Shown piece by piece: positions 3,089 to 33,299 of a stretch of 64,000 nucleotides of DNA. The DNA lies in contig MCFH01000021.1 of NCBI GenBank assembly GCA_002104945.1, positions 620,001 to 684,000 of the forward strand, given 5' to 3'. The notes under the pieces were generated by a model that ran no database searches, was not told the DNA's origin, and was given only the letters and a program-made list of their open reading frames with translations. A program made the translations under genes and the position numbers. Position 1 is the stretch's first letter, and each line of letters opens with the position of its first letter. The stretch is from Piromyces finnis finn (Eukaryota; Fungi; Neocallimastigomycota).

Positions 3089-4905
3089 ATGAATAATAAT
3101 ACTGTGGATCGTAAAGAATCCCAAGAAACTTTGGGAGAATCAGTAGTCGTCGATATTACTGACAAAACAATTAATGAATTAAAAACCAAGAATTAGCCCT
3201 TAATGAAAAGGATATTGAAGTAAAAGATTTAAAGGAAGTTGACCAAAAAAAAATAAAGGATGAAAACGATGAAAAATATGTTACCTTTGAAATCACTGGT
3301 GGAAAATTATATGCTATTACTTTTGCTTTATGTATTGTATGTCTTTTAGCTAGTTTGGATATGACTGTCGTAGCCACTGCTTTACCAACTATCGCTAGAG
3401 AATTTGGTGATATTAGTGGTTATACCTGGGTTATTACTTCATATATGCTTTCAAGTACAGCATTCCAACCAATGTACGGTAAATTTGCAGATATTTTTGG
3501 ACGTAGAGTTATGATGATATTTGCTTTAGTTATATTTATTGCAAGTTCCATATTTTGTGGTATCTCCAAAAATATGGATATGTTAATCATCTTCCGTGGT
3601 ATTCAAGGTATTGGTGGTGGTGGTTTAATGTCACTTTGTATGATTATTATTGCTGATATTATTCCAATTCGTAAACGTGGTCAATACATGGGTATTCTTG
3701 GTGCTGTATTCTCTTTCTCAACTGTCATTGGTCCACTTGTTGGTGGTTTATTTACTGATAATATTTCATGGCGTTGGGCTTTCTACATCAATGTTCCATT
3801 AGCTGTTATTGCTTTTATTATTATCTTCTTATATGTCAAAATTCCAACTCCTTCTGATAATCTTCGTAAAAAGTTATTACGTGTCGATTATGCTGGTACC
3901 ATTGTTTTAATTTTAGGTGTAGTTGCATTATTATTAGCTTTAGAATGGGGAGGTGTTGACTATGAATGGTCTTCATGGCAAATTATCCTCTTATTCTGTT
4001 TATTTGCTTTATTATTAGTTGCTTTCATTACTATCGAAATCAAGTTTGCAAAGGAACCAATTATTCCACCAGCTATCTTTAAGGTTAGAAACATTAATTG
4101 TATGATTGTTGCCTGTACTTTAATTGGTTTTGCTTTTATGGGTGCTTGTACATACCTTCCACTTTACTTCCAAATGGTACGTGGAATGAAGGCAACAACT
4201 TCTGGTTTTATGATGACTCCAATGTCTATTATTGTCACTGTATTAAATATTTCTAGTGGTATTTATATTGGAAAGCACGGACATGTTAATATTCTTTTTA
4301 TTATTGGTTTTATCTTTTCTGCTGCTTCTGGATATGTTTACAGTCTTTTAGGTCTTCATACTTCTACAGTTATTCAATTATTAATTATTGGTTTTGGTGC
4401 CTTAGGATCTGGTTTAACTCGTCAAAACATGATTCTTGTTGCTCAAGATTCAGCTCCAAAAGCTCTTTTAGCTTCTACTACTGCTGTTATCTCCTTCTTC
4501 CAAGTTATTGGTGGTATTGTTGGTATCGCAATTTTCAACACTATATTAAATAATCGTGTTCCAAAAAAATTACATGAACTTGATCCAAAGATTAGTGTAG
4601 AATCTGTCAATATGAAACTTATTAATTCTTATGGTGAAAATGGTTTAAAAGCTTATAATGATGGTTTACGTACAAACTTCTTAATCATTATCCCATGCTC
4701 ACTTTTAGCTTTAGTTTCTGTCATGTTAACAAAGAATGTTAGATTAAACAAGAAACCACAAGAATCAAAGGAATCAGATAATAGTACTGTAATTGATGAA
4801 ACTTCTAACCCAGATATGAAGGAAATTGATGATAATACAACTGTTGCTGATGGATCAACTGTAGTTGACATTGGCAATCAAGATGGTGAAGATACAAAAC
4901 AATGA
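3089..4905 (+). CDS. MFS drug:H+ antiporter, DHA2 (14-TMS, EmrB/QacA-like) family; intronless; apparent 1-nt frameshift near 3181-3185
   Basis: ORF 3355-4905 has DHA2 motifs (LDMTVVATALPTI, YGKFADIFGRR, FRGIQGIGGGG, GPLVGG, WRWAFYINVP). The same frame stays open upstream to 3178 and includes TM1 (GKLYAITFALCIVCLLASL). ATG 3089 is one frame off; adding one A to the A5 run at 3181-3185 joins the two frames. Confidence 0.85.
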
Positions 4906-5444
4906 AGAGGGATGAAGGGATGATCATTGAAAATAGGTTTAATTCATGGGATATCTGTAGATTTTTATTTAACATTTTAATATTAACATTAAAATACTTT
5001 TTTTAATTATTTTATTTATTTAATATATTTATATTTTAATTAATTATTTATTATCCATATATTTAAATATTTATTAATATTGAATTAACGATTCTAATCA
5101 ATTTTTATTTAATTAATCCGTAATATAATCAAATTTTTATTTTTTTAATAAAACATTTAAGAAAAAAATAAAGCGACAATAATAAAAATATCAAAAAATA
5201 AAATATAAAGTGTATAAATATTTTATTACTTGTTTTTTATAGATTCCTTTTAAAAAATTATCATTATTTTAATTTCATTCATTTATAATTTATTTTATTT
5301 AATATATAAAATAAAATTATTATTGTAAATATAAAAACATTTTTTTATTGTTTATTAAAAGTAATTGAGAATATAATATTGAATATCTTATTAGAATATT
5401 ATTTTTTTTTTTGTTATATCAGTAGAGATGATAGTAATAATATT

Positions 5445-5525
5445 TTAATGCCTTTTGCTATTGGCCAGCAATGGTCAATATTCAAAAGGTTTGAAGCAAC
5501 ATCCAAGAGCGTCATTATTGAAGAA
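5445..5525 (+). mobile_element. Left part of an older 5'-truncated LINE copy (T) interrupted by later insertions; continues at 11262-11284 and 14176-14447
   Basis: Matches the LINE ORF C-terminus (MPFAIGQQWSIFKRFEATSKSV). The whole of T is bounded by a 17-bp direct repeat ATGATAGTAATAATATT at 5428-5444 and 14447-14463. Confidence 0.8.
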
Positions 5526-5820
5526 CCCTCTTGGGAACGTGCCTTCATTTATTTAATAAATGTAGTTTCTAAAGGGGGTCTACTCATGCTCATGGTACTG
5601 AGAGAGTAGAAAGAATTAAATCCAAGTATTGCGCAATGGATGCTTGGTGCCCTCTTAGGAATGTGCCTTCATTTATTTAATAAATGGAGTTTATCAAGGG
5701 GGTCTACTCATGCTCATGGTACTGAGAGAGTAGAAAGAATTAAATCCAAGCATTGCGCAATGGATGCTTGGTTAGTCTTTAAGGGAAAATTATTAGGACT
5801 AAGCTCATGGTACTGAGCGA
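5526..5820 (+). repeat. Two tandem 124-bp 5' UTR monomers plus a partial third hairpin (LINE copy A)
   Basis: CCCTCTT(G/A)GGAA starts at 5526 and 5650. GCTCATGGTACTGAG occurs three times, the last at 5803-5817. The same arrangement occurs in copies B and C. Confidence 0.9.
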
Positions 5821-6542
5821 TTAAAAAACATTTTATTCATCGAATTTAAGTATTTGATGAATAAGTTGAATGTTTGATACTCAGGTAAGTTTGTATAGTA
5901 TTTAATTAGAAGAGTAATACATTTTGTTGCTGTATTTTTTTCTTTTATTCATGTATTCATGTAGTACTACTCTTCTCTTGTAAGAATCTAATGTAGTCAA
6001 CTTTAGCATTTGCATTGTATTTTTATATTCATGTAGCTATTGTTGTATTGTTTCTTGTAAGAGACTGATTCACTCTACATCATGTAAAAATACTATTCAC
6101 AAGCTTTCTGGTGTCGACATTCTTGATTCAAATTTTTACAAATTTAAATATTTAATGAAAAGTAAAGTCAAACAATTTTAGTGTCAAAAAGCGAATCGAA
6201 TTTACTAACAACAAACCAAAACTAGAATTTTTAAAGAAAATTTACAACTAGAATTCAAAAAAAAAAAAAAGAAACTTTAAACAAAGCATCGTAACAATTT
6301 TTGTACTATCCAGTACTTTTAAGAAGAGAGAGAGAGACAGATTTTTTTCCATATACGTTATATTTGTAATTTTTATTAGTATTTATTTTATATTCAATAT
6401 TTTTTAATTAGAATTAATTATCATGTCAGTCCTTTATATTAAAGATTAGAATTATATCAGACGTGGTACCCGGTCTTTTGGTATCCCCTTAGATGATATT
6501 CGCTCCTTCTTTATCCGTGGTATTCGATCATGGTCAGTAAAT

Positions 6543-9500
6543 ATGCTATGGGAAAAACTCGAGGTTATTCTAGAAGATAAATTTAATTCAGTTATTAGTG
6601 TTAAATATTTTCAGACTTTCAATGATCACTTTTTCTTAGTCAAGGTTCATGGTTCATCAAAAGATTGTATTAAAATCTTACACATGTTAAAGAAGAAACT
6701 TTCAGTTACCTCAATTTCCTTTTCAGCTCGTAGTAGAAGGAATCACAAATACACTTTTTCCACTCTCAAACGTAAAATTTTAGTTTCTAATAAACATCAA
6801 CATTCTATTCAACAATCATTTCAACAATCAGTTCAACAATCTCATCAACAATCCGATCTTCAACAAGATCTTCAACAAGATCTTCAACAAGTTTCCCATC
6901 ATGAAAATATTCCAGATCTACAGCAAACACAATTTCAATCTCAACATTCAACAATTAATTCTAATAGTTCTATCAACTCTGATAACAGTTCAATAGTTGA
7001 TAGTTCTTCAGTTTCACAGCCATCTAGTAATAGTTCTACTTATTCCTCTGATGCATCATCCATTAATAACGATGACTTTAATAATAATAATAATAGCAAC
7101 GATTCTTCCTCATCCAACAAGCCTGATAACTTTTCTTTTTGTCTTAGTTGGAACACCAATGGGTGGAATCACGAAAAGAGAGATAGTATTAGCTATTTCA
7201 CAGCTATTTTCAAACCATTATTTTTATGTTTCCAAGAAACTGGTAATGGTTCTGGATCGAATACAGATTATCCTTGTCGTGTTACTTTGCGAAACTATAG
7301 ACACTTTTTCAAGAAAGCTGACGAATCAGTTCCTGGAATGAGAGGTTTATATTTAGGTTTTCACAATTCGTGTCAAGCCTCACTTGAAAACTTCTCTGGA
7401 AAGTATATTATTTCTATTTATACTTTTAGTCTCTGGAATAGATTCAAATGCTCGATTGGAAATGTTTATATGCCTCATAGTCATCACAACATCTATGTTG
7501 ATCATGCAAAGTTAGAAGTTCGCTTGTGGTTACAAACTCATTCATCCCATCCATCGATTCTTGTTGGTGATTTTAATATGTCTAAAGTAAAATTATCCAA
7601 CTGGTTATCAACTAATGGATTAGGAGATTGGGAAATTCTTCCGCTTAGAGGGTCTACTATCTCTTGGACTCGAGGTGATCAATCTTCCGACATTGACCAT
7701 GCTCTTATCAATTCGAAGATGAAAGATCTTATTCACTCAGGATCATTTATAAATAATTTTTATCCTGTATCAGACCATAAGCCACTTCTTATTAATGGTA
7801 AAATTATTCCTATGGAAGATTTTTCTAATGACTTTAATGTTCCTAAGAAAATTCTGAAATGGAATAGATTAAAATGTATTGAGGAAAAGGAATCTATTCT
7901 CAGTCATAATAAATTCCAAATACTTTCAGCAAAATTCAACGATCCTAATGTTTCTACAGATGAACTTTCCAAAGAGTTTACTTCAACTGCTTTTTCAATT
8001 GCAGACGAGCTCAGTATTACCTCAGCAAATAATGTTATAAAGTCTTCATTTCATATTTCACAACAAATTTTTAATCTTCAAAAAATCAAAATGAAGTTGT
8101 ATAAGAGATTTAAAAAAGAAAGAATTTATGATATAGATGAATTTATTAAAAGAATTAAAATCTACCGTAAGCTCATTGATTACATCCACAAAAGATGTAA
8201 TGAATTTAGGAAACAAGAATATCTTCATTGGATTAAAACAGGATGTGAGTATATGAAGAGTCATAATCCTAAGAAGGCCTGGAAATGGATCAAGAAAACT
8301 GCAAAAATTGGAAAAGATTCTTTCTTTATTGCTCAACCAATTAAAAATAAAAATGGAGAATTAGTTGTTGCTACGGAAGAACAACTAGATGTGTGGCATG
8401 ATCATTTCGAAAATCTTGCATCAGATCCAAGTGGTGTAAGTCTTGATTTGGAGCATTGGTATGAAGAACCAACGAATAAACGTTTTTCACTTCCTATGCT
8501 TGATGAGTGGGATATCAACCAAGATATTAGTATTGATGAAGTCAAGTCAGCTATCCTCTCTACTCCAAATTATAAAGCATCAGGTCCGGATGGTATTCCA
8601 ATTGAATTTTACAAAGCATTAATTCCATCAAGTAATGATTCTAATAATGCTACAGGTAATAATTCTTCTGGTAATACTACTTCAGATAATGATGCTCATG
8701 GTTTAAATTTTATTCTTAAATTATTTAACCGTATTTGGGATGGAGATTTCCCCAACTCATGGAATGAATCCAGTATTGTTTCTATTCCTAAGAAGGGAGA
8801 TTTGACAGATTGTGATAACTATCGAGGTATATCACTTATCAATAATGGTATTAAGTTGATCTCCAAAATTGTCACCACTAGAATCTCAGAATATGGTCTA
8901 AAGAATAATTTCATTAGACCTGAACAATTTGGTTTTCGAAAAAAGGAAGAAAGTATCAGTCTTTTCATTTCAATCCAAGAAATATGCCGTAGACGTCAAT
9001 TAGATAATAAAGAGACATATTTGGCCTTTTTAGATCTCAGGAAAGCATACGATTCAGTCCCAATCGGTAATATTCTCCATAAATTAGATTGTTTAGGAAT
9101 CCGAGGTAAGAGTTTACAATTTATCAAAAATTTATATTTAACATCTAAGGCTAATGTCAAATTAGATGGACAATTCTCGAAATCTTTTGATGTGAAGAAA
9201 GGAGTCCGTCAAGGTTGCCCACTTTCGCCTATTCTTTTTAATCTCTTTATTAATGATATATTTAAAGAGTGTGAAGATCTCGGAGTTAGTTTAGGTGACA
9301 CTCGATGCTGTGGTGGACTTTTTGCAGATGATATAGTTATTTGTGCTCCAACAAGAGGATGCTTAAAAAAGATGCTTAGAAGAGTTAATGAATGGGCCTT
9401 GTATAATGAAATGGAATTTGGTATCCAGAAATGTTCAACGATGGTGATTCGTCCTGAATCAATAGAAAATCAGAACAAGAGAGATCCAACATTTTACTTA

Positions 9501-10976
9501 GCAGGACAACCCATTCCAACTACTGACTGCTACACTTATCTTGGTGTTCCATTTGATAAGAATTTGTCCCTTAAACCAGTAATTAAAGTTCTTAATAACA
9601 AGGTTTTGAAAGAACTTTTCTCAGTCAGTAAATTCTTAAGAAATCCTAATATTCCTATTCCTTTCAAAAAACTAGTACTTAACTCTCAAGTGATTAGCAG
9701 AGTTTCATACTTTGCACCATTACTTGGATCCAACAAAGCTAGGTCTAGGATTGCTCAGAAGCATGTTAACAAAGGAATACGATGGGTTGCCGGAGTTCAT
9801 AAAGCCGTATCGTTTATATCTTTATACTCTATCTCAAAAGATTTGAATATTCCTCCATTGTCAGCCAAATGTGCGTTAGCTCAGGTTAGATGTTTTAACA
9901 AATGGAAAAACTCAAATTGTATTATCTCACACCTTGTCAATTACATTCCTAAATTTAGAAAATACACGTGGTGCAAATCAAGTAGGACACTTGAAAAAAA
10001 ACTAAAGAAGCATGGAGATGTTAAAGCAGTTAAAAACTTTTATTGGAAAGATCTCAAAGGGAATTCAATCAAAGCGCAATATTATGATGATAATAAATTT
10101 ATTGAAACTAAAGATTTTATTAAATTATGTTATGAGTACCCAGAGTTTGCCTATGGCTTCTACTGGCTATTGAAAGCAAGAAGCGGATATAAGTTGGATG
10201 CTAGAGTTGCCAAAGCTGCTAAATTTGTTGATCCAGTTTGTCCTAACTACTGTCCATGTTGCAAGTGTGGAGATCAAAGTATTAAACATTGGTTATTAGA
10301 TTGTCCAACATTTAGAGATATCCGTATTAAACATTATGATTCCATAGTCCAGCTATTAAATTTTTTCAGTCAACGTAATTCCAATAGTCCTATCAATAAT
10401 AATGAAATTGATAATGTCAGTAGAGATAGCAATAACAGTAATAGTAATAGTAACAATAATAATAATAACAATAGTAATAATAACAATAGTAATAATAACA
10501 ATAGTAGTAATAGTAATAATAGAAATAGTAATAATAACAATAGTAGTAATAGAAATAATAATATTAATAATGATAGCAATAGTGAAGATAATAATTCTAA
10601 TTTAGATAGTAATTTAGTTAATGATAGTAATAGTTCTAATAATCCGGTGAATATTAATGTGTATGATTATTCTAGTGTGTGCAGTAAAATATTTAAATTC
10701 CTTCTTGGGGGAAGAAGTTTTAACAATATTAATTACAATTCAAGGGAATGGAAAGAACTTTGTAAGCGTCAGATTCAATCTGGTACTAATGAAGGAGCAC
10801 CATTCTTGACGGTAACCGCGGAACTTCTAACCAAAATCATGCCTTTTGCTATTGGCCAGCAATGGTCAATGTTCAAAAGGTTTGAAGCAACATCCAAGAG
10901 CGTCAATGCTGAAGAAACAGTAAGACAGGCCAGGAGGGCCAGCGCAACCAATGGAGATCATAATTTTGTTCCATGA
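6543..10976 (+). CDS. LINE polyprotein, copy A: APE endonuclease, reverse transcriptase, CCHC knuckle; true start ATG 6423 is followed by TAG at codon 9
   Basis: APE motifs SWNTNG, FQET, NVYMP, GDFN, IDH, SDH. RT motifs GPDGIP, YRGISL, QFGFR, FLDLRKAYDSV, GVRQGCPLSP, FADD, YTYLG. CCHC motif CPCCKCGDQSIKHWLLDC. GAT TAG at 6444-6449 versus GAT AAG in copy C. Confidence 0.93.
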   Translation: MLWEKLEVILEDKFNSVISVKYFQTFNDHFFLVKVHGSSKDCIKILHMLKKKLSVTSISFSARSRRNHKYTFSTLKRKILVSNKHQHSIQQSFQQSVQQSHQQSDLQQDLQQDLQQVSHHENIPDLQQTQFQSQHSTINSNSSINSDNSSIVDSSSVSQPSSNSSTYSSDASSINNDDFNNNNNSNDSSSSNKPDNFSFCLSWNTNGWNHEKRDSISYFTAIFKPLFLCFQETGNGSGSNTDYPCRVTLRNYRHFFKKADESVPGMRGLYLGFHNSCQASLENFSGKYIISIYTFSLWNRFKCSIGNVYMPHSHHNIYVDHAKLEVRLWLQTHSSHPSILVGDFNMSKVKLSNWLSTNGLGDWEILPLRGSTISWTRGDQSSDIDHALINSKMKDLIHSGSFINNFYPVSDHKPLLINGKIIPMEDFSNDFNVPKKILKWNRLKCIEEKESILSHNKFQILSAKFNDPNVSTDELSKEFTSTAFSIADELSITSANNVIKSSFHISQQIFNLQKIKMKLYKRFKKERIYDIDEFIKRIKIYRKLIDYIHKRCNEFRKQEYLHWIKTGCEYMKSHNPKKAWKWIKKTAKIGKDSFFIAQPIKNKNGELVVATEEQLDVWHDHFENLASDPSGVSLDLEHWYEEPTNKRFSLPMLDEWDINQDISIDEVKSAILSTPNYKASGPDGIPIEFYKALIPSSNDSNNATGNNSSGNTTSDNDAHGLNFILKLFNRIWDGDFPNSWNESSIVSIPKKGDLTDCDNYRGISLINNGIKLISKIVTTRISEYGLKNNFIRPEQFGFRKKEESISLFISIQEICRRRQLDNKETYLAFLDLRKAYDSVPIGNILHKLDCLGIRGKSLQFIKNLYLTSKANVKLDGQFSKSFDVKKGVRQGCPLSPILFNLFINDIFKECEDLGVSLGDTRCCGGLFADDIVICAPTRGCLKKMLRRVNEWALYNEMEFGIQKCSTMVIRPESIENQNKRDPTFYLAGQPIPTTDCYTYLGVPFDKNLSLKPVIKVLNNKVLKELFSVSKFLRNPNIPIPFKKLVLNSQVISRVSYFAPLLGSNKARSRIAQKHVNKGIRWVAGVHKAVSFISLYSISKDLNIPPLSAKCALAQVRCFNKWKNSNCIISHLVNYIPKFRKYTWCKSSRTLEKKLKKHGDVKAVKNFYWKDLKGNSIKAQYYDDNKFIETKDFIKLCYEYPEFAYGFYWLLKARSGYKLDARVAKAAKFVDPVCPNYCPCCKCGDQSIKHWLLDCPTFRDIRIKHYDSIVQLLNFFSQRNSNSPINNNEIDNVSRDSNNSNSNSNNNNNNNSNNNNSNNNNSSNSNNRNSNNNNSSNRNNNINNDSNSEDNNSNLDSNLVNDSNSSNNPVNINVYDYSSVCSKIFKFLLGGRSFNNINYNSREWKELCKRQIQSGTNEGAPFLTVTAELLTKIMPFAIGQQWSMFKRFEATSKSVNAEETVRQARRASATNGDHNFVP

Positions 10977-11210
10977 CAAAATTTTGATCTTTGGCTCGGT
11001 GTCCCATTGGAAGTCAAATACAATTATTATACTTTAGTATGATAGTGGCTTTCTTACTTTAATTAAAATTACTAGAATACATTATACCCAATTTTTATTC
11101 ATTTGTGTTTATTTAAACATATTTTTTTTATTTTTATTTATTTTTAATTTTTTATTACATGTATTATAATTTTAATTAAATTAATAATAAAGTTTAAAAT
11201 ATTTGATGCC

Positions 11211-11252
<42 letters not shown>

Positions 11253-11284
11253 ATTGAAGAAACAATAAGACAGGCCAGGAGGGT

Positions 11285-13807
11285 ATCCCTCTTGGGAACG
11301 TGCCTTCATTTATTTAATAAATGTAGTTTCTCAAGGGGGTCTACTCATGCTCATGGTACTGAGAGAGTAGAAAGAATTAAATCCAAGCATTGCGCAATGG
11401 ATGCTTGGTGCCCTCTTAGGAACGTGCCTTCATTTATTTATTAATGGAGTTTATCAAGGGGGTCTACTCATGCTCATGGTACTGAGAGTATCTGGGATGG
11501 AGACTTTCCCAACTCATGGAATGAATCCAGTATTGTTTCTATTCCTAAGAAGGGAGATTTGACAGATTGTGATAACTATCGAGGTATATCACTTATCAAT
11601 AATGGTATTAAGTTGATTTCCAAAATTGTCACCACTAGAATCTCAGAATATGGTTTAAAGAATAATTTCATTAGACCTGAACAATTTGGTTTTCGAAAAA
11701 AGGAAGAAAGTATCAGTCTTTTCATTTAAATCCAAGAAATATGCCGTAGACGTCAATTAGATAATAAAGAGACATATTTGGCCTTTTTAGATCTCAGGAA
11801 AGCATACGATTCAGTCCCAATCGGTAATATTATCCATAAATTAGATTGTTTAGGAATCCGAGGTAAGAGTTTACAATTCATCAAAAATTTATATTTAACA
11901 TCTAAGGCTAATGTCAAATTAGATGGACAATTCTCGAAATCTTTTGATGTGAAGAAAGGAGTCCGTCAAGGATGCCCTCTTTCTCCTATTCTCTTTAATC
12001 TCTTTATTAATGATATATTTAGAGAGTGCGAAGATCTTGGAGTCAGTTTAGGTGACACTCGATGCTGTGGTGGACTTTTTGCAGATGATATAGTTATTTG
12101 TGCTCCAACAAGAGGATGCTTAAAAAAGATGCTAAGAAGAGTTAATGAATGGGCCTTGTATAATGAAATGGAATTTGGTATCCAGAAATGTTCAACGATG
12201 GTGATTCGTCCTGAATCAATAGAAAATCAGATCAAGAGAGATCCAACATTTTACTTAGCAGGACAACCCATTCCAACTACTGATTGTTATACTTATCTTG
12301 GTGTTCCATTTGATAAGAATTTGTCCCTTAAACCAGTAATTAAAGTTCTTAATAACAAGGTTTTGAAAGGACTTTTTTCAGTCAGTAAATTCTTAAGAAA
12401 TCCTAATATTCCTATTCCCTTCAAAAAGCTAGTACTTAACTCACAAGTGATTAGCAGAGTTTCATACTTTGCACCATTACTTGGATCCAACAAAGCTAGG
12501 TCTAGGATTGCTCAGAAGCATGTTAACAAAGGAATACGATGGGTTGCCGGAGTTCATAAAGCTGTATCGTTTATATCTTTATACTCTATCTCAAAAGATT
12601 TGAATATTCCTCCATTGTCAGCCAAATGTGCATTAGCTCAGGTTAGATGTTTTAACAAATGGAAAAACTCAAATTGTATTATCTCACACCTTGTCAATTA
12701 CATTCCTAAATTTAGAAAATACACGTGGTGCAAATCAAGTAGGACACTTGATAAAAAATTAAAGAAACATGGAGATGTTAAAGCAGTTAAAAACTTTTAT
12801 TGGAAAGATCTCAAAGGGAATTCAATCAAAGCGCAATATTATGATGATAATAAGTTTATTGAAACTAAAGATTTTATTAAATTATGTTATGAGTACCCAG
12901 AGTTTGCCTATGGCTTCTACTGGCTATTGAAAGCAAGAAGCGGATACAAGTTGGATGCTAGAGTTGCCAAAGCTGCTAAATTTGTTGATCCAGTTTGTCC
13001 TAACTACTGTCCATGTTGCAAGTGTGGAGATCAAAGTATTAAACATTGGTTATTAGATTGTCCAACATTTAGAGATATCCGTATTAAACATTATATAGTA
13101 ATTGTAATAATATTAATAATATTAATAATAACAATAGTAATAATAACAATAGTAGTAATAGAAATAATAATATTAGTAATGATAGCAATAGTGAAGATAA
13201 TAATTCTAATTTAGTTAATAATAGTAATAGTTCTAATAATCCGGTGAATATTAATGTGTATGATTATTCTAGTGTGTGCAATAAGATATTTAAATTCCTT
13301 CTTGGGGGAAGAAGTTTTAACAACATCAATTACAATTCAAGGGAATGGAAAGAGCTTTGCAAGTGACAGATTCAATCGGGCACTAACGAAGGAACTCCAT
13401 TCTTGACGGTAACAACGGAACTTCTAACCAAAATCATGCCTTTTGCTATTGGCCAGCAATGGTCAATGTTCATAAGGTTTGAAACAACATCCAAGAGTGT
13501 CAATGCTGAAGAAACAGTAAGACAGGCCAGGAGGGCCAGCGCAACCAATGGAGATCATAATTTTGTCCCATGATAAAATTTTGATCTTTGGCTCGGTGTC
13601 CCATTGGAAGTCAAATACAATTATTATACTTTAGTATGATAGTGGCTTTCTTACTTTAATTAAAATTACTAGAATACATTATACCCAATTTTTATTCATT
13701 TGTGTTTATTTAAACATATTTTTTTTATTTTTATTTATTTTTAATTTTTTATTACATGTATTATAATTTTAATTAAATTAATAATAAAGTTTAAAATATT
13801 TGATGCC

Positions 13808-13857
<50 letters not shown>
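11285..13857 (+). mobile_element. LINE family 1 copy B: intact 5' end, about 3-kb internal deletion, nonsense and frameshift lesions
   Basis: Starts ATCCCTCTTGGG. 5' monomers join RT sequence at about 11488-11490. TCA>TAA near 11727. A47 tail at 13811-13857. TSD AGGCCAGGAGGGT at 11272-11284 and 13857-13869. Confidence 0.92.
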
Positions 13858-13860
<3 letters not shown>

Positions 13861-14140
13861 CAGGAGGGTCAGCGCAATCAATGGAGATCATAATTTTGTT
13901 CCATGACAAAATTTTGATCTTTGGCTCGGTGTCCCATTGGAAGTCAAATACAATTATTATACTTTAGTATGATAGTGGCTTTCTTACTTTAATTAAAATT
14001 ACTAGAATACATTATACCCAATTTTTATTCATTTGTGTTTATTTAAACATATTTTTTTTATTTTTATTTATTTTTAATTTTTTATTACATGTATTATAAT
14101 TATAATTAAATTAATAATAAAGTTTAAAATATTTGATGCC

Positions 14141-14175
<35 letters not shown>
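13858..14175 (+). mobile_element. Short 318-bp LINE 3'-end unit (B') with A32 tail, tandem with 14176-14447
   Basis: ORF end, 3' UTR and poly(A) 14144-14175, followed again by GGCCAGGAGGGT at 14176. Confidence 0.88.
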
Positions 14176-14177
<2 letters not shown>

Positions 14178-14447
14178 CAGGAGGGTCAGCGCAATCAATG
14201 GAGATCATAATTTTGTTCCATGACAAAATTTTGATCTTTGGCTCGGTGTCCCATTGGAAGTCAAATACAATTATTATACTTTAGTATAATAGTGGCTTTC
14301 TTACTTTAATTAAAATGACTCGAATACATTATACCCAATTTTTATTCATTTGTGTTTATTTTTGATTTTTGATTTTTGATTTTTTATATTACATGTATTA
14401 TAATTTTAATTAAATTAATAATAAAGTTTAATGCCGTTAAAAAAAAA
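14176..14447 (+). mobile_element. Right part (3' end) of the older LINE copy T
   Basis: Older 3' UTR variant (ATGACTCGAATAC, GATTTTT repeats), A9 tail, then the 17-bp TSD. Confidence 0.85.
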
Positions 14448-14553
14448 TGATAGTAATAATATTAATAGTGACAATAGTAATAATAATATTAATATTTAAT
14501 AATTTTAATAATAGTAGTAATATTTACAAGTGATCAGCAGAGTTTCATACTTT

Positions 14554-16391
14554 TTAATATCCTTACAAAGTTATATAAATTAGGTATACGTGGTAAGTGT
14601 TTTGATTTTCTCAATAATCTCTACTCTACCTCAAAAGCTCGTGAACGTTTCTTGGATATGCTTTCTAATGAATTCCCTATCAATCGTGGTGTAAGACAAG
14701 GATATCCTCTTTCTCCTATTCTATTTAATCTCTTCATCAATGATATTTAAATAAATGTGAAAGGCTTGGAGTTAGCTTAGGAAATAAACGTTGCTGTAGT
14801 GGCCTTTTCGCTGATGATATTGTTCTGATTGCTCCTAGCAAGAAGAACCTTCAAAATATGCTCAATCTAGTCCTTGATTGGGCTAATTTAAATGAAATGT
14901 CTTTTGGAATAAATGTGCAACTATTGTTATTAAACCTATCAACTTTAATAGATCCCCTAGTTATGTCGACCCAACATTTTACATCGGTATGTACTCGATT
15001 CCAAAGGTTTCTTGCTATACTTATCTTGGAATCTCATTCGACGAAGATCTCTCTCTGACACCTATTCTGTCTAATATGTACAAAAAAGTTCAGAAATCTT
15101 TATTCTCTTTTAAGAGCTTCCTCACTAACAATTGTGTTCCTATTGGCTTAAAAAATATAGTAATTAATTCCTATATTTTAAGCAAAGTCTCTTATTATGT
15201 TTCTTTACTTGGTTCCAACAAAAATAGAACTAGAAGAGTCCAATCTCTTATCAATATTGCTGTTTTATGGAGTGTCAATAGCTTTCACAATAAAAGTCTT
15301 AATAACAAGATTTTGTTTTTGAACGAAATTCATTTATTAGTCTGTATGATCTTACAAGAGATATGAAGATTCCTTTGCTAAATAATGGAAGTAAAGCCTT
15401 CAGATATACTAACAACAAATTCCTTAATTCAAATCGCCTAATGCCTATCGGTCTCAACAAACCTCACTTAAATTTAGGAATTACCTGGATTATTCGTATT
15501 CGATGCGGTTATGAATACACTACCCGAATTGCTATTGCCAGTAATAGAGTTACTCCTGACTGCCCTTGTGTCTGTTCATGTTACGGATATGACGAACAAT
15601 CTATTTACCATTGGATATTAGAATGTTCTGTATTCTCTGAATACAGAACTTCTTCACTTAGCTTTCTTGACGATCTTTTTACCCTTTTTTACAATAAATA
15701 TAAGAATCAATTCATCACATACTTAATCCCTAAAATGGAAGTAAGAAAAATAATTTATAACTATGTTTTTACGTTCCTTCTTGGTGGAACTTTAGCTTAT
15801 GATGAGCTACAAATCGATAAGGCGGAACAAAGATATTTGAATGAACAGCTTTACAGTTCATCGGGGTCTCATGTTCCATATGTAGAGGGTCTCGCGGCTT
15901 TTTTTACTAAAACAATCCCTATCATCAGTAGCTCTATGAGGCTACTTTTTGATAGGTTTAGTAAGACACCTAACGTAATCAAGAGCGCCGACGTCGTACC
16001 GAAATGGCAAAAGAACATTCTCAGTGTTCCGTACACAGGGTTCAATGTTAGTATTTCTTCGAGTGAAAACATTATGAACTCATGGGAGAGTTTAGTGGAC
16101 ACCACACTATCATACCTGATGTTACTTCTTTTTTTTTTTATTTCATTTAATTTATTAGGTAGGGACCAATCCCACACAGTACAAATTGCAGAGTTCATTG
16201 AATTTTAATGCAACTTAAATAATTATTTTATATTATTTTATATTTATATTTTTATTTATATATATTTTATTATTTTTATTTATTATTTATTATATCAATA
16301 TGTATTATCACCTAATATTATGTAATATCACAAATTAATTAAATAAATAAAAGATGTGTATTCTCTTCCTAGTCTAAAAAAAAAAAAAAAA
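14554..16391 (+). mobile_element. 5'-truncated, frameshifted LINE of a second, divergent family
   Basis: Degenerate RT (KLGIRGKCFDF, GVRQGYPLSPILFNLFINDI, FADDIV, YTYLGISF), CCHC-like CPCVCSCYGYDEQSIYHWILEC, a different 3' UTR and an A16 tail at 16376-16391. Confidence 0.85.
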
Positions 16392-17571
16392 TTTGCACCA
16401 TTACTTGGATTCAACAAATCTAGGCCTAGAATTGCTCAGAAGCATGTTAACAAAGGAATACGGTGGGTTGCCGGAGTTCGCAAAGCTGTATCGTTTATAT
16501 CTCTATACTCCATTTCAAAAGGAAATTCAATCAGCAATATTATGATGATAATAAATTTATTGAAACTAAAGATTTTATTAAATTATGTTATGAGTACCCA
16601 GAGTTTGCCTATGGCTTCTACTGGCTATTGAAAGCAAGAAGCGGATACAAGTTGGATGCTAGAGTTGCAAAAGCTGCTAAATTTGTTGATCCGGTTTGTC
16701 CTAACTACTATCTATGTTGCAAATGTGGTGTTCAAAGTATTAAGCATTGGTTATTAGATTGTCCAACATTTAGAGATATCCGTATTAAACATTACAATTC
16801 CATAGTCCGACTATTAAATTTTATCAGTCAACGTAATTCCAACAGTCCTATCAATAATAACGAAAATGTTAATATAAGGAGAGATAGCAACAATAATAAT
16901 AATAGTAACTATAGTAATGATAGCAATAGTGAAGATAATAATTCTAATTTAGATAGTAATTTAGTTAATAATAGTAATAGTTCTAATAATCCAGTGAATA
17001 TTAATGTGTATGATTATTCTAGTATGTGCAATAAGATATTTAAATTTCTTCTTGGGGGAAAAAGTTTCAACAATACCAATTACAATTCAAGGGAATATGG
17101 AAAGAACTTTGCAAGTGTCAGATTCAATCTGGTACTAATGAAGTAACACCATTCTTGACGGTAACCGCGGAACTTCTAACCAAAATCATGCCTTTTGCTA
17201 TTGGCCAGCAATGGTCAATGTTCAAAAGGTTTGAAGCAACATCCAAGAGCGTCATTGCTGAAGAAACAGTAAGACAGGCCAGGAGGGTCAGCGCAACCAA
17301 TGGTGATCATAATTTTGTTCCATGACAAAATTTTGATCTTTGGCTCGGTGTCCCATTGGAAGTCAAATACAATAATTATACTTTAGTATAATTGTGGCTT
17401 TCATACTTTAATTAAAATGACTCGAATACATTATACCCAATTTTCATTCATTTGTGCTTATTTGAACATATTTTTTTTATTTTTATTTTTAATTTTTTTA
17501 TATAATATGTATTATAGTCTTAATTAAATTAATAATATAGTTTAATAATATTTGATGCCGTTAAAAAAAAA
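16392..17571 (+). mobile_element. Degenerate family-1 LINE 3' portion (copy E); its first 27 bp lie at 14527-14553, split off by the family-2 insertion
   Basis: CAAGTGATCAGCAGAGTTTCATACTTT (14527-14553) continues as TTTGCACCATTAC (16392), as in copy A near 9684-9724. Internal deletion near 16520, CCHC region, 3' UTR and A9 tail. Confidence 0.85.
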
Positions 17572-17619
17572 TCACATTTTTTTTTACTTTTGCATAATAG
17601 TAGCTTTCTTACTTTAATT

Positions 17620-18220
17620 ATCCCCTTGAAAGTGTGTCTTCATTTATTTAATAAATGAAGTTTCTCAAGGGGCTCTGCTCATGCTCATGTTACTGAGCGA
17701 GTAGAAATAAATTCTAAACTTGTTAGTATTTATTTTATATTTAATTTATTTTTAATTAGAATTAATTATCATGTCAGTCCTGTCCTTTATATTAAAGACA
17801 AGAATTATATTAGACGTGGTACCCGCTCTTATAATATTCCCTTGGATAATATTAGCTCCTTCTTTATTCGTGGTATTCGATCATGGTCAGTTAGTAAGCT
17901 ATTCTGAAGGATATATTTATTTGGTTATTAGTGTTAAATATTTTATGAATTTCAATGATCACTTTTTCTTAATCATGATTCATGATTCAAAGAAAGACTG
18001 GAATAAAATCTTACATATCTTAAGTAAGAAATTTTCTATTACTTCAATTTTCTTTCTTTAGCTTGTAGTAAAAGGAATCATAAATACACTTTTTCCTCAT
18101 TCAAACGTAAATTTTTAGTTTCTAATAAACATCAACAATCAGTTAAACTACCTCATCAATATTCATATCACCAATCTAATCAAATTCAACTCCAACAAGA
18201 TCCTCAACAAGATTTGGAAA
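17620..18220 (+). mobile_element. Diverged family-1 LINE 5' fragment (copy D): one monomer, shortened UTR, frameshifted ORF start
   Basis: ATCCCCTTGAAAG...GCTCATGTTACTGAGCGAGTAGA monomer, then TTAATTAGAATTAATTATCATGTCAGTCC and degenerate N-terminal and Gln-rich coding sequence. Confidence 0.85.
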
Positions 18221-19080
18221 CAACAAATTTCTCTTTTATACTAATCATTTAGATAAATGCTTACAAAATGGAATATTTTAAGGTAATTTTTGTTTTACTT
18301 AAAAAACTATTACTATTATTAACATTACTTGTAATTGAAGATGGAGAGGTAGTATCTAAATTTCAAGAAATAGGGTTTTATTGTAGATTCAACATTTATT
18401 TGGTTCTCCCATTTATATTCTTCGTTTTTATAAACCCTTTATTTTTGGTTATTTTTATCCACACTTTAATAATAAATGAATAATTTTTATTAAATGGATC
18501 ATCGTCACTAACCATTTAATAGTATAATAATAATAATTATAAAATGAATAATTTCTAAAAAAATTGACAAACTAAAAAAAATACTTGTTTTTCCTATCTT
18601 TAGTTTTATTAATATTTTGTTGTTTATTATTTTTAAGATAGTAATTTTATCAGAATAGAATCCTATATAAATATTTAATGGAATGCCAATTTTATTACTA
18701 ATTCTTAGTTTAAGCATAGGTAACGAATAAATTATACTATTTTATTATATATTATTCTTATTATTATTATTAAATAACTACTTCGCTTTTTTTTTCTTTA
18801 TTATAGATTGATTTCTTAGAATTAACTGTAAATGATCCCTAACATAAAATATATATTAAAATTACATTCAATAAATAGGCTTAAATTAATAATTATATCT
18901 TTTTCTTATATTATCAAACGAATATATTCATTAAATTTGAAGATAAAATCAATTGAAAATAATTTATCCAATTCATCATCTAAAAACGTAAATCTGAATA
19001 ATTAGTGATGTAGAGTATCATACTACAGTCCGTTATTTGAATTAATTAAATTAAACCTAGAATTACTCAGTAGCAAAAAA

Positions 19081-19560
19081 TAATACAACTTGAATTTTTC
19101 CCATTTGTCGAAACATCTAACCCGAACTATTAATACATTTTGATAATAATAATGAAATATTCAAATACTTCGATATTGAGTGAAAAGACATGAATGAAAT
19201 GATTTTGTATATAACCTGCAATCTACCATACTCCATTACTGTGTATTGAAAATATATACATAATGTAAATTCAGTAAGAATTCTAAATTAATAAATTAAA
19301 GAAACTGGAAAATAATAACAAAACTCAAAAACTTTTATTGAATAGATATCAGAGTGTAATATTATAAAAACAATATAAAGATAATAAAAATCGAAGAAAT
19401 TAAAGATTTATTAAATTACGTTGTATGTCCCTAGGATTATTATACGGTAGGTATTGAAAGCAAAAAGTAGATAATTAGATTAGTGCTAGGATTGTATAAG
19501 CTGCTAAATTAGCTTAGTTTATCCGAATTACTGCCCATGATACAAGAATTCGATATTGAT
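19081..19560. pseudogene. Ancient LINE relic, with an inverted part (about 19081-19250, minus) and a direct part (about 19331-19560, plus)
   Basis: The minus strand resembles copy A 9775-9925 (GGTTAGATGTTTCGACAAATGGGAAAAATTCAAGTTGTATTA). The plus strand resembles copy A 10035-10260 (GAAATTAAAGATTTATTAAATT, GGTATTGAAAGCAAAAAG, AAGCTGCTAAATT). Confidence 0.6.
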
Positions 19561-24233: not shown

Positions 24234-26195
24234 ATGAAATTTAGAACTCTTTCAATATTATCTTTAGCTGCTTCATTAGTTGCTGGTCAAAACTTTTGTT
24301 CAAGTGCTAATCACTCTGGACAAAGTGTTAAAGTTACCTCAAATAAGGTAGGTTCAATTGGAGGAATTGGTTATGAATTATGGGCTGATAGTGGTAACAA
24401 CAGTGCTACTTTCTATTCTGATGGTTCATTCTCTTGTTCCTTCCAAAATGCTAAGGATTATTTATGTCGTTCTGGTCTTTCCTTCGATAGTACTAAAACT
24501 CATGATCAAATTGGTCACATGTATGCTGATTTCAAACTTGTTAAGCAAAACATTAGAAATGTTGACTATTCCTATGTTGGTATTTACGGTTGGAGTAGAA
24601 ACCCACTTGTAGAATTCTACGTCGTTGATAACTGGCTCAGTCAATACCGTCCAGGTGATTGGGTTGGTAACAAGAAGCATGGTGATTTCACCATTGATGG
24701 TGCTAAATATACTGTTTATGAAAACACTCGTTACGGTCCATCTATTGATGGTAACACTCAATTCAAGCAATTCTTCAGTATTCGTCAACAACCACGTGAA
24801 TGTGGTACTATTGATATTACTGCTCACTTCCAACAATGGGAAAAGCTTGGAATGAAATTAGGTAAGATGCACGAAGCCAAGGTTTTAGGTGAAGCTGGTA
24901 GTAACGGTTCTGGTACTAGTGGTACTGCTGATTTCACTTACGCTAAGGTTTACATTGGTAGTGGCAACGGTAACCAACAAAACGCTTCAACTAAGACTGT
25001 TGCCCGTACTACTACTAAGACTATTAAGACTACTGTTGCCAGCAAGACTCTTCCATCCACTGGCAAGACTCTTCCATCCACTGGTAAGACTCTTCCATCC
25101 ACTGGTAAGACTCTTCCATCCACTGGTAAGACTCTTCCATCCACTGGCAAGACTCTTCCATCCACTGGCAAGACTCTTCCATCCACTGGTAAGACTCTTC
25201 CATCCACTGGCAAGACTCTTCCATCCACTGGTAAGACTCTCCCATCCACTGGTAAGACTCTTCCATCCACTGGTAAGACTCTTCCATCCACTGGTAAGAC
25301 TCTTCCATCCACTGGTAAGACTCTTCCATCCACTGGTAAGACTCTTCCATCCACTGGTAAGACTCTCCCATCCACTGGTAAGACTCTTCCATCCACTGGC
25401 AAGACTCTTCCATCCACTGGCAAGACTCTTCCATCCACTGGCAAGACTCTTCCATCCACTGGCAAGACTCTCCCATCCACTGGCAAGACTCTCCCATCCA
25501 CTGGCAAGACTCTTCCATCCACTGGCAAGACTCTTCCATCCACTGGTAAGACTCTTCCATCCACTGGTAAGACTCTTCCATCCACTGGTAAGACTCTTCC
25601 ATCCACTGGCAAGACTCTTCCATCCACTGGCAAGACTCTTCCATCCACTGGTAAGACTCTTCCATCCACTGGTAAGACTCTTCCATCCACTGGTAAGACT
25701 ATCCCATCCACTGGTAAGACTATCCCATCCACTGGTAAGACTATCCCATCCACTGGTAAGACTATCCCATCCACTGGTAAGACTATCCCATCCACTGGTA
25801 AGACTATCCCATCCACTGGTAAGACTATCCCATCCACTGGTAAGACTATCCCATCCACTGGTAAGACTCTCCCATCCACTGGTAAGACTATCCCATCCAC
25901 TGGTAAGACTATCCCATCCACTACTAAAACTATCCCATCCACTACTAAAACTATTCAATCTTCTTGTAAACCAGTTACCGTTACTGTGGTCCAAACTGTT
26001 ACTGTTACTGTTAACTCTCAACCAAGTAACAACAACTGGAACAATGGCGGTAACAATTGGAACAATGGTGGTAACAATGGTAACTGTGCTGCTAAATGGG
26101 GACAATGTGGTGGTAACGGTTACAATGGACCAACTTGTTGTCAACAAGGATCATCTTGCCAATTCGTTAATGAATGGTACTCACAATGTCTTTAA
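24234..26195 (+). CDS. Secreted GH11 endo-1,4-beta-xylanase with long Ser/Thr/Pro repeat linker and C-terminal CBM1; intronless
   Basis: Signal peptide; GH11 catalytic motifs [11 protein letters not shown] and AKVLGEAG; closely resembles the Neocallimastix XynA-type catalytic domain (recalled); CBM1 [36 protein letters not shown]. Confidence 0.96.
25056..25958 (+). repeat. Coding 21-bp minisatellite: 41 x STGKT(L/I)P plus 2 x STTKTI(P/Q)
   Basis: 25056-25916 is 861 nt, or 41 units of TCCACTGG(T/C)AAGACT(C/A)T(T/C)CCA. The count agrees with the 653-aa ORF length. Confidence 0.95.
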
Positions 26196-26699
26196 ATGAA
26201 ATAATCATTTAAAGGATAATACAAAAAGGATTCCGAATACGTTTCATAAAAGAATGAAATAAGATGGTATTCATTTTTTTATAGAAGGTTAGACAAGAAA
26301 ATATGAGTTGAAAAAAAAAATTATATAATATAGTAAATAGCTAAAAATAATCAAATAAAATATGAAAAACTTGCATTACGATATTCATAAAAATTACTAA
26401 TTAAATAAATTATAAAATATTTAATAAAATTAAAAAATAATAAAATAAATTATTGATATTAATTTTTATTTATTTGAAGTGAGCTATATAGTTATAATGT
26501 TAGTGTAAGTAATTTGGATAAGAATTATGAAGTTATGACATAATAGAAAGAGCTGATTGAAGTTATTAAAGTATATTAAAAAAAAGGTTTTATTAAATTA
26601 CTGGTAAAGTGGAAAATTGTTGTGAGGATAAATTATAATACTGAATTAAATAATAATAATTATTATATTCGTGAATTTTCGTAAAATAAGGAAATTAAG

Positions 26700-27053
26700 A
26701 AGGTTTTGAAAGGACTTTTTTCAATCAGCAAATTCTTAAGAAATTCTAATATTCTTATTCCTTTCAAAAAACTTAATAATTTTAATAATATTGTTAATAA
26801 TGGTAATAATAGCAATAGTGAAGATAATAATTCTAATTTAGTTAATAATAGTAATAGTTCTAATAATCCGGTGAATATTAATGTGTATGATTATTCTAGT
26901 GTGTGCAATAAGATATTTAAATTCCTTCTTGGGGGAAGAAGTTTTAACAACATCAATTACAATTCAAGGGAATGGAAAGAGCTTTGCAAGTGACAGATTC
27001 AATCGGGCACTAACGAAGGAACTCCATTCTTGACGGTAACAACGGAACTTCTA
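26700..27053 (+). mobile_element. Left part of an older defective family-1 LINE (T2), interrupted by copy C
   Basis: Internally deleted ORF remnant (KGLFSISKFLRN...REWKELCK then TGA). It continues at 32760. Confidence 0.85.
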
Positions 27054-30000
27054 TCCCTCTTGGGAACGTGCCTTCATTTATTTAATAAATGTAGTTTCTC
27101 AAGGGGGTCTACTCATGCTCATGGTACTGAGAGAGTAGAAAGAATTAAATCCAAGTATTGCGCAATGGATGCTTGGTGCCCTCTTAGGAATGTGCCTTCA
27201 TTTATTTAATAAATGTAATTTCTCAAGGGGGTCTACTCATGCTCATGGTACTGAGAGAGTAGAAAGAATTAAATCCAAGCATTGCGCAATGGATGCTTGG
27301 TTAGTCTTCAAGGGAAAATTATTAGGACTAAGCTCATGGTACTGAGCGATTAAAAAACATTTTATTCATCAAATTTAAGTATTTGATGAATAAGTGAATG
27401 TTTGATTTTTCAGGTAAGTTTGTATAGTATTTAATTAGAAGAGTAATACATTTTGTTGCTGTATTTTTTCTTTTATTCATGTATTCATGTAGTACTACTC
27501 TTCTCTTGTAAGAATCCAATGTAGTCAACTTTAGCATTTGCATTGTACTTTTATATTCATGTAGCTATTGTTGTATTGTTTCTTGTAAGAGACTGATTCA
27601 CTCTACATCATGTAAAAATACTATTCACAAGCTTTCTGGTGTCGACATTCTTGATTCAAATTTTTTACCAATTTAAATATTTAATGAAAAGTAAAGTCAA
27701 ACAAGTTTAGTGTCAAAAAGCGAATCGAATTTACTAACAACAAACCAAAACTAGAATTTTTAAAGAAAATTTACAACTAGAATTCAAAAAAAAAAAAAAG
27801 AAACTTTAAACAAAGCATCGTAACAATTTTTGTACTATCCAGTACTTTTAAGAAGAGAGAGAGAGACAGATTTTTTTCCATATACGTTATATTTGTAATT
27901 TTTATTAGTATTTATTTTATATTCAATATTTTTTAATTAGAATTTATTATCATGTCAGTCCTTTATATTAAAGATAAGAATTATATCAGACGTGGTACCC
28001 GGTCTTATGGTATCCCCTTAGATGATATTCGCTCCTTCTTTATCCGTGGTATTCGATCATGGTCAGTAAATATGCTATGGGAAAAACTCGAGGTTATTCT
28101 AGAAGATAAACTTAATTCAGTTATTAGTGTTAAATATTTTCAAACTTTCAATGATCACTTTTTCTTAGTCAAGGTTCATGGTTCATCAAAAGATTGTATT
28201 AAAATCTTACACATGTTAAAGAAGAAACTTTCAGTTACCTCAATTTCCTTTTCAGCTCGTAGTAGAAGGAATCACAAATACACTTTTTCCACTCTCAAAC
28301 GTAAAATTTTAGTTTCTAATAAACATCAACATTCTATTCAACAATCATTTCAACAATCAGTTCAACAATCAGTTCAACAATCTCATCAACAATCCGATCT
28401 TCAACAAGATCTTCAACAGGATCTTCAACAAGTTTCCCATCATGAAAATATTCCAGATCTACAGCAAACACAATTTCAATCTCAACATTCAACAATTAAT
28501 TCTAATAGTTCTATCAACTCTGATAACAGTTCAATAGTTGATAGTTCTTCAGTTTCACAGCCATCTAGTAATAGTTCTACTTATTCCTCTGATGCATCAT
28601 CCATTAATAACGATGACTTTAATAATAATAATAATAGCAACGATTCTTCCTCATCCAACAAGCCTGATAACTTTTCTTTTTGTCTTAGTTGGAACACCAA
28701 TGGGTGGAATCATGAAAAGAGAGATAGTATTAGCTATTTCACAGCTATTTTCAAACCATTATTCTTATGTTTCCAAGAAACTGGTAATGGTTCTGGATCG
28801 AATACAGATTATCCTTGTCGTGTTACTTTGCGAAACTATAGACACTTTTTCAAGAAAGCTGACGAATCAGTTCCGGGAATGAGAGGTTTATATTTAGGTT
28901 TTCACAATTCGTGTCAAGCCTCACTTGAAAACTTCTCTGGAAAGTATATTATTTCTATTTATACTTTTAGTCTCTGGAATAGATTCAAATGCTCGATTGG
29001 AAATGTTCATATGCCTCATAGTCATCACAACATCTATGTTGATCATGCAAAGTTAGAAGTTCGCTTGTGGTTACAAACTCATTCATCCCATCCATCGATT
29101 CTTGTTGGTGATTTTAATATGTCTAAAGTAAAATTATCCAACTGGTTATCAACTAATGGATTAGGAGATTGGGAAATTCTTCCGCTTAGAGGGTCTACTA
29201 TCTCTTGGACTCGAGGTGATCAATCTTCCGACATTGACCATGCTCTTATCAATTCGAAGATGAAAGATCTTATTCACTCAGGATCATTTATAAATAATTT
29301 TTATCCTGTATCAGACCATAAGCCACTTCTTATTAATGGTAAAATTATTCCTATGGAAGATTTTTCTAATGACTTTAATGTTCCTAAGAAAATTCTGAAA
29401 TGGAATAGATTAAAATGTATTGAGGAAAAGGAATCTATTCTCAGTCATAATAAATTCCAAATACTTTCAGCAAAATTCAACGATCCTAATGTTTCTACAG
29501 ATGAACTTTCCAAAGAGTTTACTTCAACTGCTTTTTCAATTGCAGACGAGCTCAGTATTACCTCAGCAAATAATGTTATAAAGTCTTCATTTCATATTTC
29601 ACAACAAATTTTTAATCTCCAAAAAATCAAAATGAAGTTGTATAAGAGATTTAAAAAAGAAAGAATTTATGATATAGATGAATTTATTAAAAGAATTAAA
29701 ATCTACCGTAAGCTCATTGATTACATCCACAAAAGATGTAATGAATTTAGGAAACAAGAATATCTTCATTGGATTAAAACAGGATGTGAGTATATGAAGA
29801 GTCATAATCCTAAGAAGGCCTGGAAATGGATCAAGAAAACTGCAAAAATTGGAAAAGATTCTTTCTTTATTGCTCAACCAATTAAAAACAAAAATGGAGA
29901 ATTAGTTGTTGCTACGGAAGAACAACTAGATGTGTGGCATGATCATTTCGAAAAGCTTGCATCAGATCCAAGTGGTGTAAGTCTTGATTTGGAGCATTGG

Positions 30001-32759: not shown

Positions 32760-32760
<1 letters not shown>

Positions 32761-33133
32761 GGAACTTCTAACCAAAATCATGCCTTTTGCTATTGGCCAG
32801 CAATGGTCAATGTTCAAAAGGTTTGAAACAACATCCAAGAGTGTCAATGCTGAAGAAACAGTAAGACAAGCCAGGAGGGTCAGCGCAATCAATGGAGATC
32901 ATAATTTTGTTCCATGACAAAATTTTGATCTTTGGCTCGGTGTCCCATTGGAAGTCAAATACAATCATTATACTTTAGTATAATAGTGGCTTTCTTACTT
33001 TAATTAAAATGACTCGAATACATTATACCCAATTTTTATTCATTTGTGTTTATTTTTGATTTTTGATTTTTTATATTACATAATTTTAATTAAATTAATA
33101 ATGAAGTTTAAAATATTTGATTAAAAAAAAAAA
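32760..33133 (+). mobile_element. Right part (3' end) of the older copy T2
   Basis: Resumes exactly at the TSD; older 3' UTR variant; A11 at 33123-33133. Confidence 0.88.
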
Positions 33134-33299
33134 CTTTAATATTATACTATTGGAACTTTTTTCATTTAATAAATTACTAAGAAATTCTGGTATTACTATT
33201 CTACTTTTAAAATTAATTATTAATTCATATATGATTAGTAAGATAATATACTTTAATTTTGATAAAATTAAATATATTACTAAAATATTTTAGTAAATG

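Follow-up and report, generated by a model that had tools for sequence, protein, structure and literature searches.

Does a retrotransposon of an anaerobic gut fungus build clusters by inserting into older copies of itself, always on the same strand? The question is raised by a 64,000-nucleotide stretch of the Piromyces finnis genome (assembly GCA_002104945.1, contig MCFH01000021.1, positions 620,001 to 684,000), here called the window, which has a GC content of 23% and holds a 5.7-kb retrotransposon without long terminal repeats, a long interspersed nuclear element (LINE). A preliminary description had proposed that this LINE keeps inserting into the 3' end of its own older copies. We show that copies of the family were inserted into one another in an order that can be reconstructed and in a single orientation, and that such insertions recur elsewhere. 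The locus is probably a true nest made by target-primed reverse transcription, with a strong, non-exclusive tendency of the elements to integrate into LINE DNA on the same strand.

Insertion scars and layout of the core nest

The core nest consists of a relic (Z), an old copy (T), two young copies (A and B) and a short unit (C), joined at target-site duplications (TSDs) and read against the open reading frame (ORF) and the 3' untranslated region (3'UTR) of the family:

5415–5444, + strand: left part of relic Z, the start of the family's Asn-rich segment, including T's left TSD (5428–5444)
5445–5525, + strand: T-left, an old 5'-truncated copy, element coordinates ~5314–5403; its last 12 bp (5514–5525) are A's left TSD
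5526–11250, + strand: copy A, full length, with two 124-bp monomers, an ORF at 6543–10976 and a 37-A tail
11250–11284, + strand: A's right TSD (11250–11261), 10 bp of T and B's left TSD (11272–11284)
11285–13857, + strand: copy B, with an intact 5' end, an internal deletion at 11488 and a 47-A tail
13857–14174, + strand: B's right TSD (13857–13869) and unit C
14174–14463, + strand: a third copy of AGGCCAGGAGGGT, T-right (old-subfamily 3'UTR, 8-A tail) and T's right TSD (14447–14463)
14464–14526, + strand: continuation of relic Z, Asn-rich segment

Exact-match searches of the window located all three of the TSD pairs that had been read from the letters, each on the + strand only. The TSD of T (ATGATAGTAATAATATT) lies at 5428 and 14447, that of A (ATTATTGAAGAA) at 5514 and 11250, and that of B (AGGCCAGGAGGGT) at 11272 and 13857 with an extra match at 14174; a further AGGCCAGGAGGGT match at 17276 is an internal site of an older copy, E, described below. 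The pairs adjoin pure poly(A) tails of 37, 47 or 8 A, and the element 5' end (CCCTCTTGGGAACG) was found next to TSDs at 5526 and 11287.

The nesting of A and B in T was borne out by excising A, B and C in silico, which left one continuous 5'-truncated copy T with element coordinates ~5314–5672. Both copies of A's TSD read ATTATT, a variant private to T, at a place where young copies read AATGCT; the duplicated bases were thus derived from T. Because the TSDs carry host-specific variants of this kind, they are real insertion scars. Copy T, only 358 bp long, was thus struck twice, at sites 22 bp apart. The host of T was also correctly recognized as an Asn-rich relic of the same family: the rebuilt flank of T has a 14-base exact match with a second full-length copy, H, aligns to the start of H's Asn-rich segment, and reaches a local score of 92, compared with a mean of 31 and a maximum of 63 for 200 shuffles against A's equivalent segment. 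As had been claimed, all three insertions share one orientation and fall in the C-terminal part of the family ORF, A's site 26 codons and B's site 13–19 codons before the stop and T's site in the Asn-rich linker.

The junctions show the marks of target-primed reverse transcription, namely poly(A) joined to a staggered-cut TSD, 0–2 extra bases at the 5' junction, 5' truncation and internal deletion. In copy B, element position 203, in the second 5' monomer, is joined to position 3206 at 11488 with 1 nt of microhomology, and this private 3-kb deletion appears typical of template switching; the last 275 bp of B are identical to H. An old-subfamily 3'UTR is common to T and to G, the host of H, and a young one to A, B, C and H; young-copy tails are pure and 31–47 A long, while old-copy tails have 8–16 A. 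Since 3'UTR subfamilies and tail lengths separate old from young, the order was relics, then T, then A and B. A 3' transduction of a composite was ruled out for A, which has T-left upstream of it with a perfect TSD.

Unit C as a probable recombination product

Unit C (13870–14174) comprises only the last ~305 bp of the element and a 31-A tail. It belongs to a tandem stretch (13857–14186) with a period of 317 bp and is followed by the third copy of B's 13-bp target. At the first diagnostic positions (alignment columns 160–170) unit C is T-like and lacks B's two private bases, and from alignment column 263 onward it is young-like; a single base sets it apart from the recombinant predicted from T and B. 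This hybrid sequence, with a T-like start and a young-like rest, led us to reject an independent third insertion at B's site in favour of a crossover. The 3' end of B and T-right lay in tandem as direct repeats, which makes unequal exchange between them the most parsimonious origin of C. On its base pattern, unit C is thus a likely B/T recombinant, and we do not count it as an insertion.

Structure and coding capacity of the element

Copy A has two 124-bp monomers at its 5' end, a pure 37-A tail at its 3' end and a single ORF (6543–10976) of 1477 aa. The ORF contains a reverse transcriptase (RT) domain (RVT_1, 123.6 bits, cut-off 29.6) and, N-terminal to it at residues ~201–412, an endonuclease domain (Exo_endo_phos, 31.5 bits, cut-off 24.5); PF03372 is borne by related LINE proteins. 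A zf-RVT match C-terminal to the RT is weak (16.1 bits against a cut-off of 27.5), with a Cys/His motif visible in the translation. The closest solved structure to the RT is human L1 ORF2p (E 4e-33, against 3e-18 for R2), other LINE clades having no structure among the matches. No ORF of at least 100 aa that could serve as a separate ORF1 was found in the ~900-bp leader, and the single ORF carries a fused N-terminal extension. The copies bear the hallmarks of LINEs of the apurinic/apyrimidinic endonuclease type, with tails of 8–47 A, TSDs of 12, 13, 13 and 17 bp, and 5' truncation of T, G and two further copies, E and D.

Copy A had been described as full length. This is correct for its complete length, but a stop at 6447–6449 interrupts A at codon 9 of the longer ORF of copy H, and restart is possible only at Met41. 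Copy H, which is 98.6% identical to A, has an intact ORF of 1508 aa (27952–32478) and for this reason is favoured over A as a candidate active copy. RNA-library contigs cover the element, DNA contigs indicate that it is extremely abundant, and the 5.7-kb family is probably still active. Copies with a single monomer exist as well: in contigs of runs X1, X5 and X10, placed at window position 11409, the first 124-bp monomer is joined directly to the post-monomer leader.

Nesting elsewhere in the window

A second cluster was found at 27–33 kb:

26688–27053, + strand: G-left, from an internally deleted old-subfamily copy; its final 13 bp (27041–27053) form H's left TSD
27054–32759, + strand: copy H, full length, ORF 27952–32478, 44-A tail
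32758–33133, + strand: H's right TSD and G-right (old-subfamily 3'UTR, 11-A tail)
33134–33667, + strand: R, a strongly diverged LINE relic directly after G's tail

Copy H was inserted into the old copy G with a TSD of 12–13 bp; in element coordinates this site precedes A's by ~95 nt. It is an independent case of nesting, 16 kb away.

The core nest itself extends to about 18.2 kb:

14527–14553, + strand: E-left, element 4162–4188; the copy resumes at 16392
14554–16391, + strand: D, a 5'-truncated LINE of a second family with a 16-A tail, inside E
16392–17571, + strand: E-right, an older family copy, element 4186–5697, 9-A tail
17579–18213, + strand: a 42-bp scrap of family 3'UTR (element 5499–5540), then the complete 5' end of an old copy F (from 17620)

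Over RT segments, D has 60–82% aa identity to P0015 and 45–62% to A, and by this measure its insertion in E is a cross-family nest on the same strand. The 3' end of D resembles the gut-metagenome contig L011. In total, the window holds seven nested or abutting events, all on the + strand.

Nesting among related LINEs in gut metagenomes

To see how relatives behave, we used a comparison set of 48 gut-metagenome contigs encoding LINE relatives with 31–73% aa identity. A second, non-collinear LINE piece was present in eight of the 48 contigs and lay on the same strand in all eight, never on the opposite one. In two of the eight the junction lies within the last ~50 codons. In contig L005 (4755–4884), C-terminal codons of the same family come next after the tail, at a point corresponding to element coordinate ~5330. 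In contig L017 (4766–6584), whose LINE is 45% identical to A, the junction behind the tail reads AA|GAGCGTC and lies 7 nt away from the position homologous to A's nick (GAGCGTC|ATT). The two nicks fall at homologous KSV codons, and the bases of these codons (AAGAGCGTC) are common to families that are 45% identical in aa sequence. The peptide at the C terminus is conserved between families. Cross-family nests were found in L010 at codon ~1205 and in L014 at codon ~950.

The proposal of self-targeting is partly supported, the behaviour having been repeated independently (H in G, L005 and L017), but the targeting is not strictly of self, as D in E, L010 and L014 show. The protein collection does not contain this genome's own LINE ORFs, its best match to the element reaching no more than 63% identity; an exact look-up of H's ORF in it gave no match, nor did a scan of the metagenome contigs for the 30-base element 5' end. 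In several relatives a poly(A) run lies at or ~0.1–0.25 kb upstream of the 5' leader (L005:48–119, L007:681–723, L008:1–20, L024:1361–1394, L025:1761–1781). These runs may reflect head-to-tail chains, or assembly joins through poly(A).

Site choice and competing explanations

We consider it probable that the nest arose as follows. Relic Z would have received the 5'-truncated T (17-bp TSD), and T in turn the young full-length A (12-bp TSD) and the internally deleted B (13-bp TSD), 22 bp apart; C would have arisen later by unequal crossover, the 3' ends of B and T then lying in tandem. The family and related gut-fungal families would favour, non-exclusively, LINE-derived DNA on the strand of the host copy, the last ~50 codons being an apparently favoured zone. 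Every new full-length copy would then supply a fresh target, and clusters would grow like Russian dolls. As to the cause of the preference for LINE DNA, we infer an asymmetric preference of the endonuclease or the ribonucleoprotein for relatively GC-rich LINE DNA in a 21%-GC genome, possibly reinforced by the harmlessness of such insertions.

The composition of the targets agrees in part with this cause. The GC-richest parts of the element are the C-terminal zone (0.43) and the 5' monomers (0.41), and the suggestion that the hits fall in a GC-richer patch was upheld at four of the five nicks, where local GC is 0.38–0.42, at or above the 93rd percentile of the window's non-LINE DNA. Before the young insertions, LINE relics made up ~7% of the window and ~12% of its non-genic DNA, which gives a P of about 2e-5 to 2e-4 for all four clean insertions (T, A, B and H) lying in LINE relic.

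Several points weigh against the proposed preference. The window was picked for its nesting, which inflates the in-window P values, and the evidence for enrichment comes from this one window and from metagenome proxies. Five of nine tails downstream of related elements enter unrelated or AT-rich DNA, so the preference is non-exclusive. T's own target is AT-rich, with a local GC of 0.18, and the four to five sites have no convincing nick motif in common other than a T at the primer end. Reads assembled over 10700–14600 gave short contigs, none of which bridged the nest junctions; read contigs break at poly(A) longer than the 31-base word, and this result neither confirms nor refutes the assembly. 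Finally, strict co-orientation is unexplained by the favoured account. The sense-strand A/T asymmetry in the zone (0.335 versus 0.205) would yield an orientation ratio of only about 60:40, so strict co-orientation needs an asymmetric cue.

Instead of LINE DNA in general, the target could be a dedicated landing pad, a specific sequence in the last ~50 codons that is recognized by the endonuclease or a C-terminal domain, as in site-specific LINEs. The sites of A, B, H, L005 and L017 all fall within about 130 nt, those of A and L017 at the homologous codons described above, and the peptide encoded there is the conserved one. A zone of ~120 nt takes in five of the 13 mapped junctions (P 3e-4 for sites spread evenly along the 3' 2.3 kb, 6e-3 for a zone twice as available); for the metagenome events only, the count is two of six (P 0.04–0.11). 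The sites of T, A, B, H and D, however, all differ in sequence, leaving no single fixed target, and other nests lie at codons ~830, ~950, 1057, ~1205 and ~1300 and in the 3'UTR. Contig joints, among those listed, tie the element 5' end to RT and 3'UTR positions. Moreover, T had little else to be struck: it offers only 358 bp, so any insertion into it must be 3', and part of the 3' bias stems from hosts being 5'-truncated. Summed contig depth, a crude measure, hardly differs between the RT and the C-terminal end and so speaks against any large surplus of 3' fragments. The sites of A and B lie in the last codons, but the claim that the 3' end is targeted is not supported as a strict rule, given sites spanning codon ~830 to the 3'UTR. 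Because cross-family nests exist, both a single landing pad and guidance by RNA–DNA homology are disfavoured, and we judge the dedicated pad unlikely.

A broader version can be advanced only as a speculation of low probability: the last ~50 codons of diverged LINE families from different gut fungi might contain a landing zone conserved between these families, such that the element carries and renews its own target, through an orientation-locked recognition mechanism that is undescribed for endonuclease-type LINEs and possibly linked to local transcription direction. If this were true, the 150-bp target could serve as a simple substrate in studies of how LINEs of this type choose their sites.

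Alternatively, integration could follow the local direction of transcription or replication, with nesting as a by-product of clustering. Such a regional effect would account for the + strand placement of all LINE pieces of two families over 28 kb, and both clusters start ~0.5 kb downstream of + strand genes; it is based on two clusters only and leaves the repeated strikes on the 358-bp target unexplained. We regard it as quite unlikely.

Very doubtful is a history without targeting, in which near-random insertions survived only in dead LINE DNA. The clusters are indeed surrounded by ordinary genes (an MFS transporter and a GH11 xylanase), and the hosts are inert relics. Yet four young copies sit in ~3 kb of relics and none in ~25 kb of the window's non-coding DNA of 13–19% GC; from survival alone one would expect neither strict co-orientation nor two insertions 22 bp apart in a 358-bp target.

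That an assembly collapse or pure tandem duplication made the apparent nest is highly improbable: the family is extremely abundant, no contig crosses the junctions and unit C is indeed a duplication product, but the copies differ (A and H by 1.4%, B by its private 3-kb deletion, T and G by their old-subfamily 3'UTR), and an assembler could not produce exact TSDs with host-specific variants at element ends.

Comparison with known self-nesting LINEs

Insertion into LINE DNA on the host's strand, which we favour here, matches the behaviour of Zepp and Cnl1, and the self-nesting habit is already known. Zepp and Zepp-like L1 LINEs of Chlorella, Coccomyxa and Chlamydomonas insert in nested fashion into existing copies and form co-oriented clusters rich in 3' ends (PMC8226300, citing Higashiyama 1997; PMC3446292), with one Zepp cluster per chromosome that is thought to be centromeric or near telomeres. 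Cnl1 of Cryptococcus forms subtelomeric arrays, its TSDs are often absent or 1–12 bp long, and a preference for G+C-rich target sites was reported (10.1101/2021.08.11.455996). The gut-fungal LINE resembles Zepp in nesting and co-orientation and Cnl1 in self-nesting in tandem orientation, a likeness of behaviour that does not imply kinship. Unlike Zepp, it has two clusters 12 kb apart among ordinary genes, and two of its three young copies retain complete 5' ends; unlike Cnl1, its nests are interstitial and its TSDs are clean at 12–17 bp; and it differs from both in its many full-length guests and its cross-family nesting.

With human L1 the element shares the endonuclease and RT layout, the poly(A) tail, variable TSDs, 5' truncation and internal deletions, but it has no separate ORF1, an ORF with a fused N-terminal extension, 124-bp 5' monomers and a much stronger self-nesting bias. 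Like site-specific LINEs of the R2, Tx1 and TRAS type, it integrates repeatedly in one orientation into a defined kind of DNA; those elements use one fixed target, whereas the gut-fungal LINE used at least five different sites in the window.

We found no paper describing LINE nesting in Neocallimastigomycota. Anaerobic gut fungi would thereby join the few lineages, green algae and Cryptococcus, with LINEs that build co-oriented self-nests; in gut fungi the habit extends to several related families and is seen away from telomeres and centromeres. Annotators of gut-fungal genomes would best read 'tandem' LINE arrays as nests, and small 3'-end repeats such as unit C as recombination products.

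Orientation and genomic surroundings

Every clearly recognizable LINE piece in the window, from two families over 28 kb, lies on the + strand. Two weak, diverged LINE matches were seen at 19080–19546, of which the 118-bp one at 19080–19197 is the sole opposite-strand LINE trace in the window. Targeting of tRNA genes was ruled out here, there being no tRNA gene in the window.

The two clusters lie 12 kb apart and are flanked by the gene for a major facilitator superfamily (MFS) transporter and the GH11 xylanase gene. Both start ~0.5 kb downstream of the stop of a + strand gene (the MFS transporter, 3355–4905, and the GH11 xylanase with CBM1, 24234–26195; n = 2). This start after gene ends, in the same direction, may mean that insertion is tied to gene 3' flanks or to transcription direction. 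Inside the GH11/CBM1 ORF, at 25044–25943, a 21-bp unit is repeated 43 times with 97% identity and 48% GC and probably encodes a repetitive linker.

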